A stretch of 64,000 nucleotides of DNA from the sequence record MK327931.1; one strand, given 5' to 3'. Shown here one piece after another: positions 3,925 through 42,465 of the stretch. Position 1 is the stretch's first letter; each line of letters starts with the position of its first letter. The notes under the pieces are model-generated. The model saw nothing but the letters and a program-made list of their open reading frames with translations. It searched no databases and was not told the origin of the DNA. The position numbers were made by a program, and so were the translations under genes.

Positions 3925-3946
3925 AATTTCCTCCTATTTTTATTCA

Positions 3947-3975
3947 ATTATACACATAAAAGAAAAGCCCGTCAA
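3947..3975 (-). promoter_or_regulatory. Sigma70-type promoter TTGACG-17-TATAAT
   Basis: Near-consensus hexamers with exact 17-nt spacing; -35 lies in the terminator hairpin. Confidence 0.8.
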
Positions 3976-3987
3976 TAGACGAGCTTT
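3957..3987 (-). terminator. Intrinsic terminator of the tail-protein operon
   Basis: Stem AAAGCTCGTC/GACGGGCTTT followed by a U-rich tract. Confidence 0.8.
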
Positions 3988-3991
3988 AAAT

Positions 3992-10067: not shown

Positions 10068-10075
10068 TATTTATA
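10068..10075 (-). promoter_or_regulatory. T4-type late promoter TATAAATA
   Basis: Exact T4 late consensus ~35 nt upstream of the tail-protein operon. Confidence 0.65.
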
Positions 10076-10083
10076 TACATAAC

Positions 10084-10106
10084 AAAAAAGCACCCAATGG
10101 GTGCTT
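10084..10106 (-). terminator. Intrinsic terminator after nrdG
   Basis: AAGCACCC/GGGTGCTT stem plus U6. Confidence 0.8.
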
Positions 10107-10109
10107 ATG

Positions 10110-10580
10110 TTAAAAATCTTTATTTTTATATAGTATTCTTTGATTATTTGAACCACGGAAAGGTAATTTTAAATTCTTTTCGGACTCGATAAACTTACCA
10201 TCAACTAATACATCTAAGTACTGAAGTATATCTTTAGCATGATTTTTCATAATCTCATCTAAAGTATACCCACTCCAGCACCAAATAGTTTTACTAGGAT
10301 AAGTTTCTTTAACTACTTTGCATAGATTTAAAACTTCATCTATATTCTTTTTCATTAATGGATCGCCGCCTAGAAGTGACAAACCACTAACATATGGTTT
10401 TTTTAGTTCCTGTAGTATAATCTCAACTGTTTCAGTACTGAACTCTTGTCCACTTCGGTAGTCCCATGCTTCTTCATTGAAGCAACCATCACATCCGTGC
10501 GAACACCCACTAACAAATAAAGAGCAGCGAACGCCCTCTCCATTTACTAAATCATCCTTGATTATCGTCTGGTAATTCAT
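10110..10580 (-). CDS. nrdG: Anaerobic ribonucleotide reductase activating enzyme (radical SAM)
   Basis: DLVNGEGVRCSLFVSGCSHGCDGC (CxxxCxxC); LPFRGSNNQRI. Confidence 0.97.
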   Translation of the reverse strand: MNYQTIIKDDLVNGEGVRCSLFVSGCSHGCDGCFNEEAWDYRSGQEFSTETVEIILQELKKPYVSGLSLLGGDPLMKKNIDEVLNLCKVVKETYPSKTIWCWSGYTLDEIMKNHAKDILQYLDVLVDGKFIESEKNLKLPFRGSNNQRILYKNKDF

Positions 10581-10884
10581 CTAATATTGCACTCACTATT
10601 TCGACAAGAACATCGCCGTGACATGATTTTGGTTTACAGAAACAACCAAGGCGTTTCCCTGCGAGTTCAAGTAATTCATCAATCTTAACTTCTCCACAAG
10701 AAATACGTTCAATAATGTATTCTCTGAATTTTTCAATTGATTCTTCTCTTGTACTAACAATGAATTCGGCTTTAGTTTGTTTATCTTTAATATGGGTAAA
10801 TGGGTTTCCCCATTTAGACCCACGTCCAATATACACATCATACGGTTCTTTGTATTTGTTAACCACAATTGGCTTTAAATCCAT
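10552..10884 (-). CDS. DUF4326-family protein
   Basis: YDVYIGRGSKWGNPF ... LAGKRLGCFCKPKSCHGDVL. Confidence 0.85.
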   Translation of the reverse strand: MDLKPIVVNKYKEPYDVYIGRGSKWGNPFTHIKDKQTKAEFIVSTREESIEKFREYIIERISCGEVKIDELLELAGKRLGCFCKPKSCHGDVLVEIVSAILDELPDDNQG

Positions 10885-10892
10885 AATTTACC

Positions 10893-12698
10893 TTATTTGT
10901 GCTGAATACGCTCACAACACTCTTGTTGTTTGCCTTTATTGAATCCACGCGAAGAAGGATTACCCAAGTAACCAGAAACACGACGAATCACTGAGATTGT
11001 CTTCTCATTACGATTATCACATACCGGACAGTGGAAACCATGTTTATCTACACTGAACTCACCCTGGAAGCCACATTCATAACAATGGTCAACTGGTTGG
11101 TTAATACCAAAATATGGTATCTTAGTGTACGCATAGTTAACTAATGTTTCAAGTGCTTGAATGTTGTTTGCTAAGTTTGGAGATTCAACATAACTGATGT
11201 TTCCACCGTTACTTAGGTAAGCAAACCCTTCTTCATAACTCCATTTATCAAATGGAGAACTTTCTACCCATACTGGTTGATGGAAGGAATTTGTGATGTA
11301 ATCACGTTTTAGTACTGAAGGATATTTTGCTTCAATGCAACGTGCAAATTTATAACAAAGCGACTCTGCTGGAGTTCCATATAGACTAAAAGCAATATTA
11401 CTTTCTTTTTTGAACTCATCACATTTTACTTTCATATAATTCAGTACTGACATACAAAACTCCTTACTGATAGAACCAGTGAGGATTTCTGAACATTCAA
11501 CAAGACCAACATAACCAATACTAATACTAGCATAACCATTGTAAAATAGCTTGTCAATGGTTTCTTCTGCACCTAAACGTGCTAATGCACCTTCCATGAA
11601 CAAAATTGGATTCTGCTTCGCTTTAGTGCCTTTTAAACGCTCCACACGGTTCATCTGAGCACGATATGCAATATTCATGTGCTCGTCTATCTTATCAAAA
11701 AACTCTCCATCAGAAGCACTCTCAAGAGCAATTAGAGGTAAATTGATAGAAACTACGCCTAAATTGAAACGACCGTTGTATTGTTCATTTCCATTTGAAT
11801 CTTCCCATTTTCCTAAGAATGAACGACAGCCCATCGGTGTTACAGCAGTACTACTACTTCCAGTCACTTTGTGATTTAATGGAACTGAAACAAAGTCTGG
11901 GTAGATTCGTTTTGATGCACAACGCATAGCTAACTGTTTAAGGTCATAATTACTATCATTGGTATTCATGTTTATACCATCTTGTAAAAAGAAAATTACT
12001 TTAGGAAACACTGGAGTAATCTTATCTTTACCTAAACCATTCTCATGAACTTTTAAGTACTGTTCAGTGATTAATTTACCAAATTTAGAAGTATTAAGCC
12101 CTAAACTAAGAGAAATGAATGCAGCTTGTCCATTAGTGCTAATCATTGAATTAGTCTGGTAAAGTAATGTTTGACATCCATCGTATACTTCTTTTCGTAA
12201 TTCTTCTTCAATGAACTCATCACTTAGATTATATTTCTTTTGTTTTTCTAACAGCTTATCCCATGACTTTTGGACGTAAGGTTCAAGACCAACGTCAATA
12301 TGAGCCAACGATTGTCCACCGTACTGGGAACTGGCAACAGCTTGGACAATTTGTGTCAGTACTGTGCAAGCTACACTGAAACTTTTTGGTTCTTCAATTT
12401 TAGCACAACCAATAGTGAAGCCGTTTTTAAGCATATCAGGATAGTTAACCAAGCAACAATTGGTCAATGGGCTAATATAGTAATCTAAATCATGAATATG
12501 ACCATATCCATCATTATGCCATTGCATTAACTCGGTGGGAATAACATCTTGTGAATAATGCTTAGATAGAATACCTGCTAGTAAATCTCTATGTGTATTG
12601 ACGCATTTTGCATCTTTATTAGCGTTTTCATTAGTAAGATCAGTATTACTCTGATTTAGGAAATTTGTTACATCGGTATATAATTTATCTAATTGCAT
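10893..12698 (-). CDS. nrdD: Anaerobic (class III) ribonucleoside-triphosphate reductase, no N-terminal ATP cone
   Basis: HIHDLDY, NCCLVN, PMGCRSFL, GRFNLGVVSINL, Zn site CYEC..CPVC, RRVSGYLG glycyl-radical motif; RBS AAGGA before MQLDK. Confidence 0.98.
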   Translation of the reverse strand: MQLDKLYTDVTNFLNQSNTDLTNENANKDAKCVNTHRDLLAGILSKHYSQDVIPTELMQWHNDGYGHIHDLDYYISPLTNCCLVNYPDMLKNGFTIGCAKIEEPKSFSVACTVLTQIVQAVASSQYGGQSLAHIDVGLEPYVQKSWDKLLEKQKKYNLSDEFIEEELRKEVYDGCQTLLYQTNSMISTNGQAAFISLSLGLNTSKFGKLITEQYLKVHENGLGKDKITPVFPKVIFFLQDGINMNTNDSNYDLKQLAMRCASKRIYPDFVSVPLNHKVTGSSSTAVTPMGCRSFLGKWEDSNGNEQYNGRFNLGVVSINLPLIALESASDGEFFDKIDEHMNIAYRAQMNRVERLKGTKAKQNPILFMEGALARLGAEETIDKLFYNGYASISIGYVGLVECSEILTGSISKEFCMSVLNYMKVKCDEFKKESNIAFSLYGTPAESLCYKFARCIEAKYPSVLKRDYITNSFHQPVWVESSPFDKWSYEEGFAYLSNGGNISYVESPNLANNIQALETLVNYAYTKIPYFGINQPVDHCYECGFQGEFSVDKHGFHCPVCDNRNEKTISVIRRVSGYLGNPSSRGFNKGKQQECCERIQHK

Positions 12699-12759
12699 TG
12701 TACATTCCTTGTATTTTGAAATCATCTGGGGGTGAAGATATTTAATATCACCAGACAAC

Positions 12760-12801
12760 ATTATAGCGTCAGAACAGGTTATTTCTCTTGACCTATATCA
12801 A
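12760..12801 (-). promoter_or_regulatory. FNR-dependent class II promoter (FNR box TTGAT-ATAG-GTCAA at 12788-12801; -10 TATAAT at 12760-12765)
   Basis: 9/10 match to TTGAT-N4-ATCAA, centred ~41.5 nt upstream of the predicted start; no recognisable -35. Confidence 0.7.
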
Positions 12802-12836
12802 GGAAAAGTCACATTGCTTTTTATTTGCACAAATAG

Positions 12837-12860
12837 AAAAAGCACCACAAGGGTGCTTTT
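12837..12860 (-). terminator. Intrinsic terminator insulating nrdDG from upstream genes
   Basis: AAAAGCACC/GGTGCTTTT. Confidence 0.8.
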
Positions 12861-12975
12861 AAAGTACTGCTAATATAACAACTGCCCAAATTAGCAGTAA
12901 TACATTGGTTGGTGCGGAAAAAAGCATATATGCAGCAAGTGCACTGCAACCTATGACAAGTTTAGCTAGTCTCAT
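12859..12975 (-). CDS. Small membrane protein (38 aa, not in ORF track)
   Basis: MRLAKLVIGCSALAAYMLFSAPTNVLLLIWAVVILAVL; tiles between neighbours. Confidence 0.55.
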   Translation of the reverse strand: MRLAKLVIGCSALAAYMLFSAPTNVLLLIWAVVILAVL

Positions 12976-13776
12976 CTGGACTCCATGTAATAGTTACTGT
13001 GAACGTCCCTTCTTGAAAACCAAACTCATCTTGTGGGATTTGTTCAGCTAATGGGTTAAATCTTGAATCGAAGGCTTCATGCACATCTCTCTGAATATCA
13101 TAGAGACTTTCACCATCGTATTCTTTTTTAAAGATTTCATTCTGCATTGATACGTAACGACCCTCGTATTCTGTCTGGATAGCCATCAAATAGTTCAATA
13201 AGTTGGTTTAACGCATAAGAACTGAAGAATGGATTATTCTTTGCAATTTCTATTCGTTTTTCAATATCCATTAATATAATCTCTGGTCTACTGAAATTAC
13301 CTTTACGTCTATATGTTAGTAAACGCTCTTTGTGTCCGTTGAACTGAAATTCAAAATATGTTGATGATGTATAATCACTTCCATCAGGAATCGGAATTGA
13401 GAAATCAACATTGTACTTATAACCAAATGCAAAAAAATAACCACCATCTTCGAACGGTATAGTTGTATCATTTAGGTGGAAATCTATTTCATCTCCTAAT
13501 ATATCAAATATCTTGGTACTTAGAGACATAAAATCATCGGCTAACATTTTTTTTACCTTATTTTATAACTCGACAGTAGTACTGAATAATGTAAGGAAAT
13601 AATGGATTATTCACGTATGTAGCGAAATTAGCTATTGTAACTTTTTTATAGTACGAATTATGAATTGTTATAAGAGTGTGGGGATCTATTGATTCTCTAT
13701 TAGAGAGTTCAACATAACGCCCACACTTCATATAAGCCTTACCATAATAATCGTAAATTATGTCATATTTTTCCAT
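12962..13776 (-). other. Three hypothetical CDS (12962..13198, 13137..13547, 13558..13776)
   Basis: Tightly tiled minus-strand ORFs with no recognisable motif. Confidence 0.6.
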
Positions 13777-23430: not shown

Positions 23431-24024
23431 TTAATATTTTAAAACATCAAACTCTTCGCTTACGNNNNNNNNNNNNNNNNNNNNNNNNNNNNNNNNNNNN
23501 NNNNNNNNNNNNNNNNNNNNNNNNNNNNNNNNNNNNNNNNNNNNNNNNNNNNNNNNNNNNNNNNNNNNNNNNNNNNNNNNNNNNNNNNNNNNNNNNNNNN
23601 NNNNNNNNNNNNNNNNNNNNNNNNNNNNNNNNNNNNNNNNNNNNNNGATTGTATGATTGTGGAGAATGATAAATTGTCCACCTCCTACATCTTGTGATGC
23701 ATCTCGTGCACCCCATTCTTCTTTAAACATTTGACGAATAATTGGAATAACTTTAAGAACCAAATATTGTGAAAATGTTTGACTAGCATCTTGTTCAGGT
23801 AAATTAAGGTTATAATTTAACAACTGACCCATACGAAATGATGTAGTATAACCCAATGCCATTACTTCTTTAGTTCTAGTTAGTCCATCATCATGTAACT
23901 TGATAAATTCTTTCTCGAATACCTTTGGCTCAGTTTGAACAGTTTTTGTAAATCCATTGCTTCCTAACTTATCCCCAGCAATAAAAGAACTTACTCCGTC
24001 AGTGTGTGCAATAATACAGGTCAT
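23431..24024 (-). CDS. Ntn-hydrolase (HslV/proteasome-beta-like) peptidase; partly N
   Basis: Start MTCII (Thr2), AGDKLGS, PKVF, GYTTSFRMGQLL. Confidence 0.7.
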   Translation of the reverse strand: MTCIIAHTDGVSSFIAGDKLGSNGFTKTVQTEPKVFEKEFIKLHDDGLTRTKEVMALGYTTSFRMGQLLNYNLNLPEQDASQTFSQYLVLKVIPIIRQMFKEEWGARDASQDVGGGQFIILHNHTIXXXXXXXXXXXXXXXXXXXXXXXXXXXXXXXXXXXXXXXXXXXXXXXXXXXXXXXXXXXXXVSEEFDVLKY

Positions 24025-25593: not shown

Positions 25594-25849
25594 ATTCTAC
25601 AGTATTAAGCTTCTGACAAATCATATCAGCTTCTACTNNNNNNNNNNNNNNNNNNNNNNNTCCAAATCTACTTGTTACCCTTTTCTCACTACGGTGTATA
25701 CAGTTTACAATATAGTACTTATTATTTTGTGCAGAAAAACGAACTTCATAATTTCGAAAAGAAGTATTAGGTTCATCCATAGCAACTATATATAACATAA
25801 AAATAAAAAACACTGTTATTAGAAAAGCAATAATAATTATTACTGTCAT
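25592..25849 (-). CDS. Membrane-anchored hypothetical protein
   Basis: N-terminal TM helix; short N-run inside. Confidence 0.55.
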   Translation of the reverse strand: MTVIIIIAFLITVFFIFMLYIVAMDEPNTSFRNYEVRFSAQNNKYYIVNCIHRSEKRVTSRFGXXXXXXXXVEADMICQKLNTVE

Positions 25850-26337
25850 TTATCAAGACCCTTATCATAAATGCAATTAACAATAATTNNNNNNNNNNNN
25901 NNNNNNNNNNNNNNNNNNNNNNNNNNNNNNNNNNNNNNNNNNNNNNNNNNNNNNNNNNNNNNNNNNNNNNNNNNNNNNNNNNNNNNNNNNNNNNNNNNNN
26001 NNNNNNNNNNNNNNNNNNNNNNNNNNNNNNNNNNNNNNNNNNNNNNNNNNNNNNNNNNNNNNNNNNNNNNNNNNNNNNNNNNNNNNNNNNNNNNNNNNNN
26101 NNNNNNNNNNNNNNNNNNNNNNNNNNNNNNNNNNNNNNNNNNNNNNNNNNNNNNNNNNNNNNNNNNNNNNNNNNNNNNNNNNNNNNNNNNNNNNNNNNNN
26201 NNNNNNNNNNNNNNNNNNNNNNNNNNNNNNNNNNNNNNNNNNNNNNNNNNNNNNNNNNNTTGTGAAATACATTTACTTTCCTCAGCAACTACTTCTGCTA
26301 TCTTCAACCAAGTCGTATGTTTCATTATAAGCTCCAA
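25846..26337 (-). CDS. Probable dCMP deaminase (mostly N)
   Basis: MKHTTWLKIAEVVAEESKC resembles the T4 Cd N-terminus; catalytic motifs fall in the gap. Confidence 0.6.
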   Translation of the reverse strand: MELIMKHTTWLKIAEVVAEESKCISQXXXXXXXXXXXXXXXXXXXXXXXXXXXXXXXXXXXXXXXXXXXXXXXXXXXXXXXXXXXXXXXXXXXXXXXXXXXXXXXXXXXXXXXXXXXXXXXXXXXXXXXXXXXXXXXXXXXXXXXXXXXXIIVNCIYDKGLDK

Positions 26338-28218
26338 TACTTAACAATGCGTTTTTACACAAATCATGAATTTTCATAACTCGAATATAGTTTAACACAT
26401 CTGTTTCATTAATTTCAAATGGTTTATCTGCATATGTAGACCACGTTTGATTTAATTCAATAACAAATGTAATTTTATCTGTATCCATAATATTATCACA
26501 AAATCTACGAAAATCTTGCTCTTCATCGGAAAGTCTGAAATTTAAATCATTTTTTAAACCATTAACTGTGAAGCAAATACCAGTACTGTAACCGATGCAA
26601 ATATCTTCAATATCATATAATCCATAAATTAATTTAGAGATAAACGTGCTATATTTGTTTCTATGATAATAGTTTAATATTTCTTGTTTAATATTAATTT
26701 CAATATCAGTAGTTTTTTGTAATGTAAGTTTAATTAATTCTAATGTCTTGATTATGTTATCTAACCAGATATTAGTATCATCTATACTTAGGTGTGTGTA
26801 TTTCATTATGTCCCTCTAGATTCCAATCATCAACGAGTTTAGAACAAACTTCCATATGATTATAGTACTTTTCATCCAATACATACGGTTTATTATGATN
26901 NNNNNNNNNNNNNNNNNNNNNNNNNNNATTTCTATATATGAATGACATATTTTTATGCATTAATTCTATAGTTTTCCAAATTTTCTCAATATCATATAGA
27001 ATTGTTTCTAATGACAAACCTGTTAACTTGGAAATTCTTTCAACTTTAAACCCTGATAACATCATAGTACTGTTGTGTTTAGTTAAGTAACTATATCCAA
27101 TAGAACTATGTATTAACTCAATACTATCAGTGTATGTGATTGTTTTTAGAAATGATTTTATATTTCTATTAAACCAATACCACTTTTTGTTTTTATTATA
27201 ACAACTATACCATTTCTTCAATATATCAATTGCTTCAGAATTAATTTTTAAANNNNNNNNNNNNNNNNNNNNNNNATGATGGTAAAAAATATCACTTTGT
27301 TCTTCAGTTAAATTATATTGCTGCATATTCACCTACCCTAGTAACAATGATTCCTTGGGTATTTAGCTCATATAGATCAAAATATGATCAATGGAAAATT
27401 GATATACAGCAATAAAAATAGGAATCCCATGATAGGATTCCTTTTCACAATATTATTTTTGATATGGGGTGTACTGATATTTTTCACAATCAGAAACAGT
27501 TAGAACACCTTCATCATAACCATATTGAAGTACAAGGNNNNNNNNNNNNNNNNNNNNNNNAACAACATCTTTATAACGAACAATCTTATGAGATTGATTC
27601 TCAACTGCTTTCATAATCCCCATTAGCAACCAGCGACCTTCATCGGTGTGTAATTTAGCAAAGCGTGGACGCTTTGTCGCTGCCATAATATCAGTCCATT
27701 CAGCTTTAAAAATGTGTGGACGTTTTGGAATATCATATAGTGTAGTAGGGAAAGTTACATTATTTTTCTTCATTGCTTCTGCTTGTGCTGCACGATAGCC
27801 CTGACGATATAATGGATGCTGCATTTTTAGCTGTTCAGCACTTAGAACTACTTTTGCTTTGTATGCGTCATAACCATCTTTATATTGTGCATTGGACATA
27901 TTATTCTTTTACCTCATCAGTTTGAATGTATTTTTTGTCAGAGAATGTACCGTGTTCTTTACGCACAGCTTCTGCATGTTGAACCGCATCAACNNNNNNN
28001 NNNNNNNNNNNNNNTAGTACTTCATTCATTAATTCAAGTACAATTGCAAAACCATTCAGCACACGCTCAGATTCATCTACATTTTTTAATTCAAGTGCTA
28101 CTGCACTAATTTGATCGAACGCAACATTAATAAAATCGGAATCTTCTAATACATTTGCTACTTCCGTATTATTACGTACTAGTACTTTCATATAATCTCC
28201 ACAAAGATGATGCCCCAT
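26282..28218 (-). other. Hypothetical CDS (26282..26806, 26778..27332, 27453..27899, 27901..28218)
   Basis: Tiled ORFs interrupted by short N-runs. Confidence 0.5.
27414..27445 (-). terminator. Intrinsic terminator
   Basis: AGGAATCC/GGATTCCT with T/A tracts on both sides. Confidence 0.7.
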
Positions 28219-41514: not shown

Positions 41515-41819
41515 TTTATTACCTCTATATCTACATCAGTTCCATAATATGATATTAATCCATCATCAGATTCACACTGAATAGACAACTCAGATTCATA
41601 GTATGTTACTTTATTCACTGTTAGTACTTGTTCTTCAATTACTCCAGAAAAATAATTCATCTCACGTACACGAACTTTAGTTCCTTTAGGTAGTTCATCT
41701 GAGATTTTTCGAACAAGATCATAAGCAGCCTGTTCAAGTGTGTACAGTAATTGTAATCTATCTTGAATATTCATATTATTTCCACCAACTGGTATCACGT
41801 CCATTAGACAAAGATTCAT
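41511..41819 (-). CDS. Small hypothetical protein (helix+beta family)
   Basis: ELPKGTKVRVRE. Confidence 0.55.
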   Translation of the reverse strand: MNLCLMDVIPVGGNNMNIQDRLQLLYTLEQAAYDLVRKISDELPKGTKVRVREMNYFSGVIEEQVLTVNKVTYYESELSIQCESDDGLISYYGTDVDIEVIK

Positions 41820-42465
41820 TGTACTGATGCCTAAAATTAGTTTTTGGATTATTGTTCATAGTACTAATAAAATCAAATTTAACATTCTCTTGAATATATT
41901 TTTTAACACTATCTTTAAATTTAATAGTACTGAAGTCTAAATCTAGATGTTCATACAATACCGGATGACAAAACTCATGTGTACGCAACGCTGGCATGGT
42001 ATCCTTAATGTATTGCACAGTGTTAATCATTGCATTGTATTCCGGCATAGCACGCATCATCATTAGCTGAAAGTGTTCTTCCTCTGACATTGACTCATCC
42101 AAATCAATAACGACTTCATCATTTTTAGAGTCATAAACTTTAATGGTACTCTTGGTTGGATCAAGCATAGCCCACTCTGGATACAGGCATGTTTTCCAAA
42201 AAGGATTATTGCACTGAAACATACTAATGAGATTTTGATCTTTATCAAAAATAGCAAATCCAAGATCCGAACTTGGTTGTACTTCACATACACAAATATC
42301 GTAAGACGAGTCTTCAGTACTGAGTGAACCAACTACATTTGATATATGTGAATATGGAGTTTCTCTTGACTCCAACTGAAATGTACTTTCAATTCGATTG
42401 ATTTGTGGATGTAATGTAATTACACCCCTTAGTACATATAAAATTCTATCTAAATCTTTAATCAA
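41776..42465 (-). CDS. EExxFQ family protein
   Basis: MSEEEHFQLMMMRAMP. Confidence 0.65.
   Translation of the reverse strand: MIKDLDRILYVLRGVITLHPQINRIESTFQLESRETPYSHISNVVGSLSTEDSSYDICVCEVQPSSDLGFAIFDKDQNLISMFQCNNPFWKTCLYPEWAMLDPTKSTIKVYDSKNDEVVIDLDESMSEEEHFQLMMMRAMPEYNAMINTVQYIKDTMPALRTHEFCHPVLYEHLDLDFSTIKFKDSVKKYIQENVKFDFISTMNNNPKTNFRHQYNESLSNGRDTSWWK

Follow-up and report, generated by a model that had tools for sequence, protein, structure and literature searches.

Several phages are known to carry the site of a host regulator in front of their own genes, e.g., the Pho box of PhoB before cyanophage pstS and phoA, NtcA sites in cyanophages and LexA boxes in temperate phages. In these cases the site of a host environmental sensor stands before a viral gene, and viral expression follows the physiology of the host. 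Among cellular promoters, that of nrdDG in E. coli and Salmonella, which governs the class III (anaerobic) ribonucleotide reductase (RNR) and its activase, has two sites for the oxygen sensor FNR, at -64.5 and -33.5 (31 bp apart), and two NrdR boxes. It is activated by FNR under anoxia (PMC2892513, PMC3688515), and an FNR peak was found at E. coli nrdD by chromatin immunoprecipitation (PMC3688515). The class II FNR promoters of E. coli (narG, dmsA, nirB, nrfA, ydfZ) have a TTGAT-N4-ATCAA box ca. 22 nt upstream of the -10, with its centre near -41.5, and the site replaces the -35 (PMC3688515). Among the FNR-activated promoters of this organism with a known start, 19 of 23 have a site at -41.5 +/- 4 and one has it at -60.5 (PMC3688515). 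Here we have analysed a stretch of 64,000 nucleotides from sequence record MK327931.1 (hereafter the window), in which the class III RNR gene nrdD of an E. coli jumbo phage is preceded by a candidate FNR-dependent promoter. The phage encodes the same enzyme pair as host nrdDG, with one site at the class II distance instead of two. What sets it apart from the phage cases above is that the sensor is FNR and its signal oxygen, that the hosts are Enterobacterales and that the gene encodes a class III RNR. We found no report linking FNR with the nrdD of a jumbo or Rak2-like phage in the literature searched.

On the minus strand, which carries nearly all the genes of the window, the stop codon of a 38-aa open reading frame (ORF) is followed by a terminator, the block AATGTGACTTTTCC, the FNR-type box, 22 nt, TATAAT, 15 nt, TAAATA, AAGGAA and the ATG of nrdD (Table 1). 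The single mismatch of the box TTGATATAGGTCAA falls on the innermost base of the second half-site, so that the TTGA and TCAA cores are intact. There is no TG extension before the -10 hexamer (the preceding bases are CGC), the hexamer located 17 nt upstream of it is AGAGAA (1/6 to TTGACA), and a two-hexamer promoter scan of the nrdD upstream intergenic region found no promoter. A start 7 nt after TATAAT (ca. 12753, a T) would put the box centre at -41.5, and purines are found nearby at 12756 and 12752. The box, the -10 hexamer, the missing -35 and the terminator had been put forward by a sequence-only reading of the window, in which TAAATA does not figure, and its letters and coordinates for box and hexamer, the missing -35 and, by way of the 22-nt spacing, the arithmetic of the -41.5 position were borne out, while its two literature premises (-41.5 as the canonical class II position and FNR activation of E. 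coli nrdDG) agree with the published data cited above. With a consensus -10 but neither a -35 nor a TG extension, the proximal sigma-70 promoter should be weak alone. In the window, the usual promoter of the phage is an extended -10 (TGATATAAT), also devoid of a -35, and the nrdD promoter would be of this usual type minus the TG, which fits activator dependence.

The comparison with related phages gives this arrangement most of its weight. We used the nrdD upstream regions of 11 relatives, 80 IMG/VR nrdD loci and seven more GenBank phages, from which 24 distinct Rak2-like upstream regions were obtained, with NrdD proteins 69-100% identical to that of the window. They belong to Asteriusvirus, Salmonella phage 7t3, Klebsiella phages fENko-Kae01 and RCIP0023, Erwinia phages Hallingskeid and pEa_SNUABM_50, Pectobacterium phage CBB, Yersinia phages fHe-Yen9-03/04, XbC2 and IMG/VR contigs. 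All 24 have TTGAT-N4-(A/G)TCAA at 74-90 nt before the nrdD ATG, with TTGA and TCAA invariant, and most of the boxes in the relatives are perfect (10/10), typically TTGATCTAGATCAA. The recorded hosts of these phages are E. coli, Salmonella, Klebsiella, Yersinia, Erwinia, Pectobacterium and, by record label, Xanthomonas. Mean pairwise identity among 15 lineage representatives was 0.95 over the 10 consensus positions of the box, against 0.44 for the 45 nt upstream of it, 0.48 for the first 22 nt downstream and 0.40 for the next 21 nt; for TAAATA it was 1.00. Thus, the FNR box is an island of selection in a scrambled sequence, and together with TAAATA it makes up the only two conserved blocks of the nrdD upstream regions. 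In Asteriusvirus, EJP2, Hallingskeid and RCIP0023 a spacing of 22 nt separates the box from the hexamer TATAAT downstream; the spacing is 23 nt in the group of Salmonella 7t3 and Klebsiella fENko-Kae01. The semi-conserved block directly upstream of the box, AATGTGAC.TTTCC, was conserved in a box-anchored comparison only in the Asteriusvirus and Salmonella/Klebsiella groups. Its position is the one at which the C-terminal domain of the RNA polymerase alpha subunit (alpha-CTD) would sit at a class II promoter, and the block may be an alpha-CTD/UP-like contact or the site of a second regulator.

We consider it likely that the phage nrdD promoter is of class II and is activated by the FNR of the host. 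FNR binding, the transcription starts, the oxygen dependence and the temporal class of each promoter are what we infer from the features described. The FNR dimer, which binds DNA only with an intact [4Fe-4S] cluster, i.e., at low oxygen, would occupy the box centred ca. 41.5 bp upstream of the start and recruit the host RNA polymerase, as it does at the class II promoters narG, dmsA and nirB. In support of this, PA5oct, a relative within the clade, needs the host RNA polymerase throughout infection (PMC7318152). The oxygen-labile class III reductase and its activase would then be made early in infection and mainly in anoxic cells, and the invariant TAAATA, 21 bp downstream and most likely a late-type promoter of the phage, would provide FNR-independent transcription late in infection. 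Compared with the class II promoters of E. coli, this candidate belongs to a virulent jumbo phage and has a late-type motif 21 bp downstream.

There are several points that weigh against such an interpretation. The box of G17 itself is only 9/10, and one of the relatives that carry the box is labelled a Xanthomonas phage. In the CBB/GAP32/BF/Yersinia group the class II position is occupied by TATTTT or TATTAT (in two lineages by TTGAAT or TTTTTT), which makes a class II promoter weaker as an explanation for that group; the box is kept in 24/24 sequences, and a -10-like hexamer at 22-23 nt in most lineages. In the Salmonella/Klebsiella group and RCIP0023 the -10 has the full TG extension (TGATATAAT), and the promoter may fire there without FNR, which would only boost a constitutive expression. 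Activation by FNR also presupposes that host FNR and sigma-70 remain usable after infection. Finally, the distance from the box to TAAATA is invariant (43 nt) while that from the box to TATAAT varies between 22 and 23 nt, and this would also fit an FNR dimer that acts on the downstream promoter in a class I arrangement.

TAAATA is depleted ca. 3-fold in the G17 genome, whose two strands have 95 and 138 copies versus 329 and 417 expected from the dinucleotide content, and for TATAAT the count is close to expectation on one strand and exceeds it somewhat on the other (for genome-wide statistics we used the MK327931 copy with the seven N stretches of the window masked). Within the 150 nt upstream of an ORF there are 96 TAAATA copies, of which 53 begin at a distance of 31-60 nt from the ATG; many copies precede large structural ORFs. 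The base before the motif is a T in the nrdD copy; genome-wide it is A in 48% and T in 18%. The description of phage CBB reports a gp55-like sigma factor for it and assigns to the Rak2-like phages a putative late promoter, ATAAATA (PMC5259590). The depletion, together with the accumulation at 31-60 nt before ATGs, indicates that TAAATA is probably the core of a late-type (T4 gp55-like) promoter of the phage itself. Like G17, T4 is a virulent myovirus that encodes a class III RNR together with the activase, and its late motif is a short A/T-rich element of the -10 type; the T4 late promoter is TATAAATA, whereas the core conserved among Rak2-like phages is TAAATA, preceded by a variable base. 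With these statistics the probable late promoter core can be usefully defined in a clade that is poorly annotated. Hence, the nrdD operon probably has two promoters, one dependent on FNR and sigma-70 and the other late-type and FNR-independent. The sequence-only reading had described FNR as the switch of the class III RNR, a term that is too strong given this probable second promoter and the full extended -10 of several relatives.

If FNR acted from a class I position, the unit would be box-N43-TAAATA, and TATAAT would be separate or secondary. The box and TAAATA are indeed the only invariant blocks and stand exactly 43 nt apart in 24/24 sequences, with a sequence between them that is only 40-48% identical. 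The -10 hexamer is displaced by 1 nt from one group to another, and it is degenerate at the class II position in the CBB/Yersinia group. Taking TAAATA as the -10, the box centre would be at ca. -62, which resembles the essential -64.5 site of E. coli nrdDG, and in fHe-Yen9-03 a -10 was assigned to the TAAATA region by automated annotation. Moreover, TATAAT and TAAATA are 21 bp (two helical turns) apart, so that one FNR dimer would face both. However, TAAATA is a poor sigma-70 -10 (3/6, without the T at -7) and behaves genome-wide as a phage late motif, and the T4 late motif needs no upstream activator. Class I FNR promoters are also rare, 1 in 23 (PMC3688515). Besides, indels are scarce across the spacer, the distance from terminator to box being nearly fixed too (in the Asteriusvirus and Salmonella/Klebsiella groups), and the fixed 43 nt may for this reason not reflect selection. 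We therefore regard FNR action from a class I position as unlikely. One variant would be that box-N43-TAAATA forms a single composite element, in which host FNR, ca. 62 bp upstream, activates or gates a late-type promoter read by a polymerase with a gp55-like sigma. If so, the oxygen sensor of the host would directly control a non-sigma-70, phage-reprogrammed polymerase, but we know of no activator of such kind at T4-type late promoters and hold this variant to be distinctly improbable.

Returning to class II activation, the box alone is not significant, as 9/10 sites are common in both window and genome. Sites with at most one mismatch number 18 in the window (10.2 +/- 3.0 in shuffles, ca. 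10 expected) and 56 in the whole G17 genome (37 in the reversed control), and one could see in the box a chance resemblance, an AT-rich palindrome that happens to lie beside an ordinary phage -10 and has no regulatory role. The probability of finding such a site in the 122-nt spacer is ca. 0.016, and an exact TATAAT at the right distance contributes a further factor that we estimate at roughly 0.004. But what effectively refutes coincidence is the conservation: a core that is invariant in 24 sequences with flanks at 40-48%, steady distances to the -10 region and to TAAATA, and a mostly perfect consensus. We give chance practically no credence.

Elsewhere in the genome the picture is that of random occurrence. 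About 90% of the 55-56 near-consensus sites of G17 are in coding sequence, as chance predicts, and the nrdD box is the only convincing intergenic one. The single perfect TTGAT-N4-ATCAA of the genome (window 42235-42248) lies inside an ORF of 229 aa (TTG start, 41776..42465) with no promoter context. A phage-wide FNR regulon was considered and rejected, since sites are neither enriched in non-coding DNA nor placed at promoters elsewhere. G17 has no Crp/Fnr-type helix-turn-helix protein either (PF13545 gave no match, whereas 14/14 control genomes matched), which leaves the host protein as the obvious reader of the box.

The palindrome could nevertheless be the operator of a regulator encoded by the phage, or of some other host factor, and expression would then be timed by the phage and not by oxygen. 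Most ORFs of Rak2-like phages are uncharacterised, there is also a fair degree of conservation in the box spacer (nTAG; 0.73 identity), which FNR does not strictly require, and the box is kept in the phage labelled as infecting Xanthomonas. On the other hand, most lineages match the FNR consensus at all 10 positions, there is one such intergenic site per genome where several operators would be expected of a phage regulator, G17 lacks a protein of the Crp/Fnr type, and the controlled gene is precisely one whose host homologue is FNR-activated. These considerations make a phage operator, or that of another host factor, quite unlikely in our opinion.

Among host proteins, CRP recognizes palindromes related to those of FNR, and the T versus G at the corresponding half-site position discriminates between the two. 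There is a TGTGA at 12813..12809, just upstream of the box, and were CRP to bind here expression would follow the carbon status of the cell. Yet all 24 boxes are of the FNR type (TTGA...TCAA) and none of the CRP type (GTGA...TCAC), and the upstream TGTGA has no partner half-site at N6. A CRP-dependent promoter (TGTGA-N6-TCACA) was rejected because every box has T and not G at the discriminating position, and we consider binding of CRP in place of FNR very improbable. For NrdR we looked for two 16-bp boxes (acaCwAtATaTwGtgt) ca. 31-32 bp apart and overlapping the promoter; none was found to be conserved in the phage spacer when compared by eye with the two boxes of E. coli nrdD, no profile search having been run. 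A resemblance to a right half-box (ATGTTGT) overlaps the -10 of G17 and is not conserved in the other groups. Capture of the host promoter was also discarded. Beyond a 12-nt identity, ATAACCTGTTCT, the host nrdDG promoter and the phage spacer cannot be aligned; this was all that blastn against the E. coli nrdD upstream region returned (E ca. 0.008 in a tiny search). It pairs window positions 12771-12782, in the promoter spacer, with the 5' untranslated region of E. coli K-12 nrdD. Neither A4 nor JNE01 shares it, and it is probably due to chance.

The genes downstream form a terminator-bounded operon, nrdD-DUF4326-nrdG, of an E. coli jumbo phage (Asteriusvirus). An nrdD-nrdG operon had been suggested, and both genes do lie in one terminator-bounded unit, which has three genes and not two. 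The DUF4326 gene keeps the same position in relatives. Translation of nrdD starts at the ATG preceded by AAGGAA, and the ATG at 12761 of a longer ORF is not used. The upstream terminator, proposed earlier as the insulator of the operon at 12837-60, was found at 12860..12838 by the scan that gave no two-hexamer promoter, has a stable fold (-14.6 kcal/mol, z-score -3.2), is annotated in the G17 record, comes directly after the stop codon of the 38-aa ORF (12975..12859) and is kept in the Asteriusvirus and Salmonella/Klebsiella groups. The nrdD leader, from promoter to ATG, showed no significant structure (fold z-score +0.16), and searching it against Rfam gave only a sub-threshold match (21.9 bits versus a cut-off of 100). 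Extended -10 sites (TGATATAAT) number 14 on the coding strand of the window and 2 on the other. G17 also encodes a class I RNR (nrdA/nrdB), ca. 143 kb from the nrdD operon; no FNR box was found before its nrdA, only a lone half-site. With both classes of enzyme present, an oxygen-dependent division of labour makes sense.

Table 1. Elements of the candidate nrdD promoter, genes of the operon and other features mentioned in the text, in window coordinates
Feature	Position	Strand	Remarks
FNR-type box TTGATATAGGTCAA	12801..12788	minus	9/10 match to TTGAT-N4-ATCAA
-10 hexamer TATAAT	12765..12760	minus	separated from box by exactly 22 nt
Predicted start zone, FNR-dependent transcript	12756..12752	minus	derived from distance to the -10
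TAAATA	12744..12739	minus	43 nt after box; starts 46 nt before nrdD ATG; 21 nt downstream of -10
Semi-conserved block AATGTGAC.TTTCC	12815..12802	minus	directly upstream of box
Intrinsic terminator of the upstream transcription unit	12860..12838	minus	9-bp stem, then T run
Ribosome-binding site AAGGAA	12710..12705	minus	6 nt before nrdD ATG
nrdD, class III (anaerobic) ribonucleotide reductase, 601 aa	12698..10893	minus	Pfam NRDD PF13597, E 1.9e-166; Gly_radical
DUF4326 gene, 110 aa, between nrdD and nrdG	10884..10552	minus	29-nt overlap with nrdG
nrdG, radical-SAM activase of NrdD, 156 aa	10580..10110	minus	Fer4_12/Radical_SAM
Terminator closing the operon	10105..10089 (about)	minus	
Canonical late promoter TATAAATA	10075..10068	minus	exact; after closing terminator, before next gene (tail gene)
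Extended -10 (TGATATAAT) motif starts	52259, 46298, 44464, 36694, 28978, 19742; also 3991..3925	minus	intergenic
N runs (671 bases in all)	23465-23646, 25638-25660, 25889-26259, 26900-26927, 27253-27275, 27538-27560, 27994-28014		

A 2.8-kb region of the window (10800-13600) is 100% identical to Escherichia phage vB_EcoM_G17 (MK327931, 370,817 bp; G17 position = window position + 260,880) and to phage Sharanji, 98% identical to 121Q and 90-94% identical to ca. 30 more Asteriusvirus jumbo phages whose hosts are E. coli and Salmonella. The matching phages were isolated on E. coli, including K-12 MG1655, and FNR is present in this host (PMC3688515). The facultatively anaerobic gammaproteobacterial host predicted from the FNR box is therefore E. 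coli, on the basis of the full identity to G17 and Sharanji, and the relatives with the box were isolated on Enterobacterales, with the one exception labelled Xanthomonas. The region 10100-13600 was also detected in bovine gut and wastewater metagenomes, and 64-74% of its sampled words were found in 12 small DNA runs of one coded organism (ca. 10 studies), which may reflect Asteriusvirus DNA carried in isolate cultures. Four runs of RNA-type libraries were also compared with the region; all are assembled contigs, the one with the largest share of it is probably DNA, and the metatranscriptome contigs are short and leave 12567-12820 uncovered.

Some additional observations concern the nrdD upstream regions of other phages. 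Xanthomonas phage XbC2 (OP292654; recorded host Xanthomonas vesicatoria, an aerobe) has a perfect FNR box, and its upstream region is almost identical to those of two IMG/VR Rak2-like contigs (3300042256, 3300031414). In the CBB/GAP32/BF/Yersinia group an AAACGTTAAyC block is conserved upstream of the box, and the position of the -10 of the other groups is taken by a conserved palindrome, ATACCCC-N7-GGGGTAT, with a T run after it, which could be a promoter-overlapping terminator or the site of another protein. The proximal nrdD upstream region of T4-like phages (NrdD 43-48% identical) lacks an FNR box. Stephanstirmvirinae phages (NrdD ca. 61% identical) have FNR-like boxes before nrdD too: in Nieznany a terminator is followed by TTGATTTCCCTCAA, 22 nt and TAGAAT; in phiWec181 we found TTGATCCTGAACAA, 21 nt and TAAAAT, with an AACAA half-site as in E. 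coli ydfZ; and in Phi92-like phages (Justusliebigvirus) TTGACTAAGATCAA lies over the upstream stop codon and is followed by 22 nt, TAAAAT and a terminator-like hairpin before the ribosome-binding site. The FNR-box trait may thus be older or wider than the Rak2-like clade; ca. 240 phage records have an NrdD that is 60-80% identical. Shortly downstream of nrdD, A4 and fHe-Yen9-04 encode a stand-alone glycyl-radical protein of ca. 120 aa (GrcA/YfiD, T4 Y06I-like), presumably under the same FNR box as nrdD, and RCIP0023 has an ORF of the same size at this position. G17 and the window lack such a protein, with a single Gly_radical match.

If the FNR-activated class II promoter is real, it would be a compact and naturally insulated oxygen-responsive promoter cassette, and host fnr would affect phage yield under anoxia, a point that bears on phage therapy in biofilms and in the oxygen-poor gut. 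It would also represent a clear case of virulent enteric phages sensing oxygen via a global regulator of the host, the gut and sediment counterpart of the cyanophages that sense nutrients via host PhoB or NtcA, and would account for how jumbo phages bearing RNRs of class I as well as class III choose between them.
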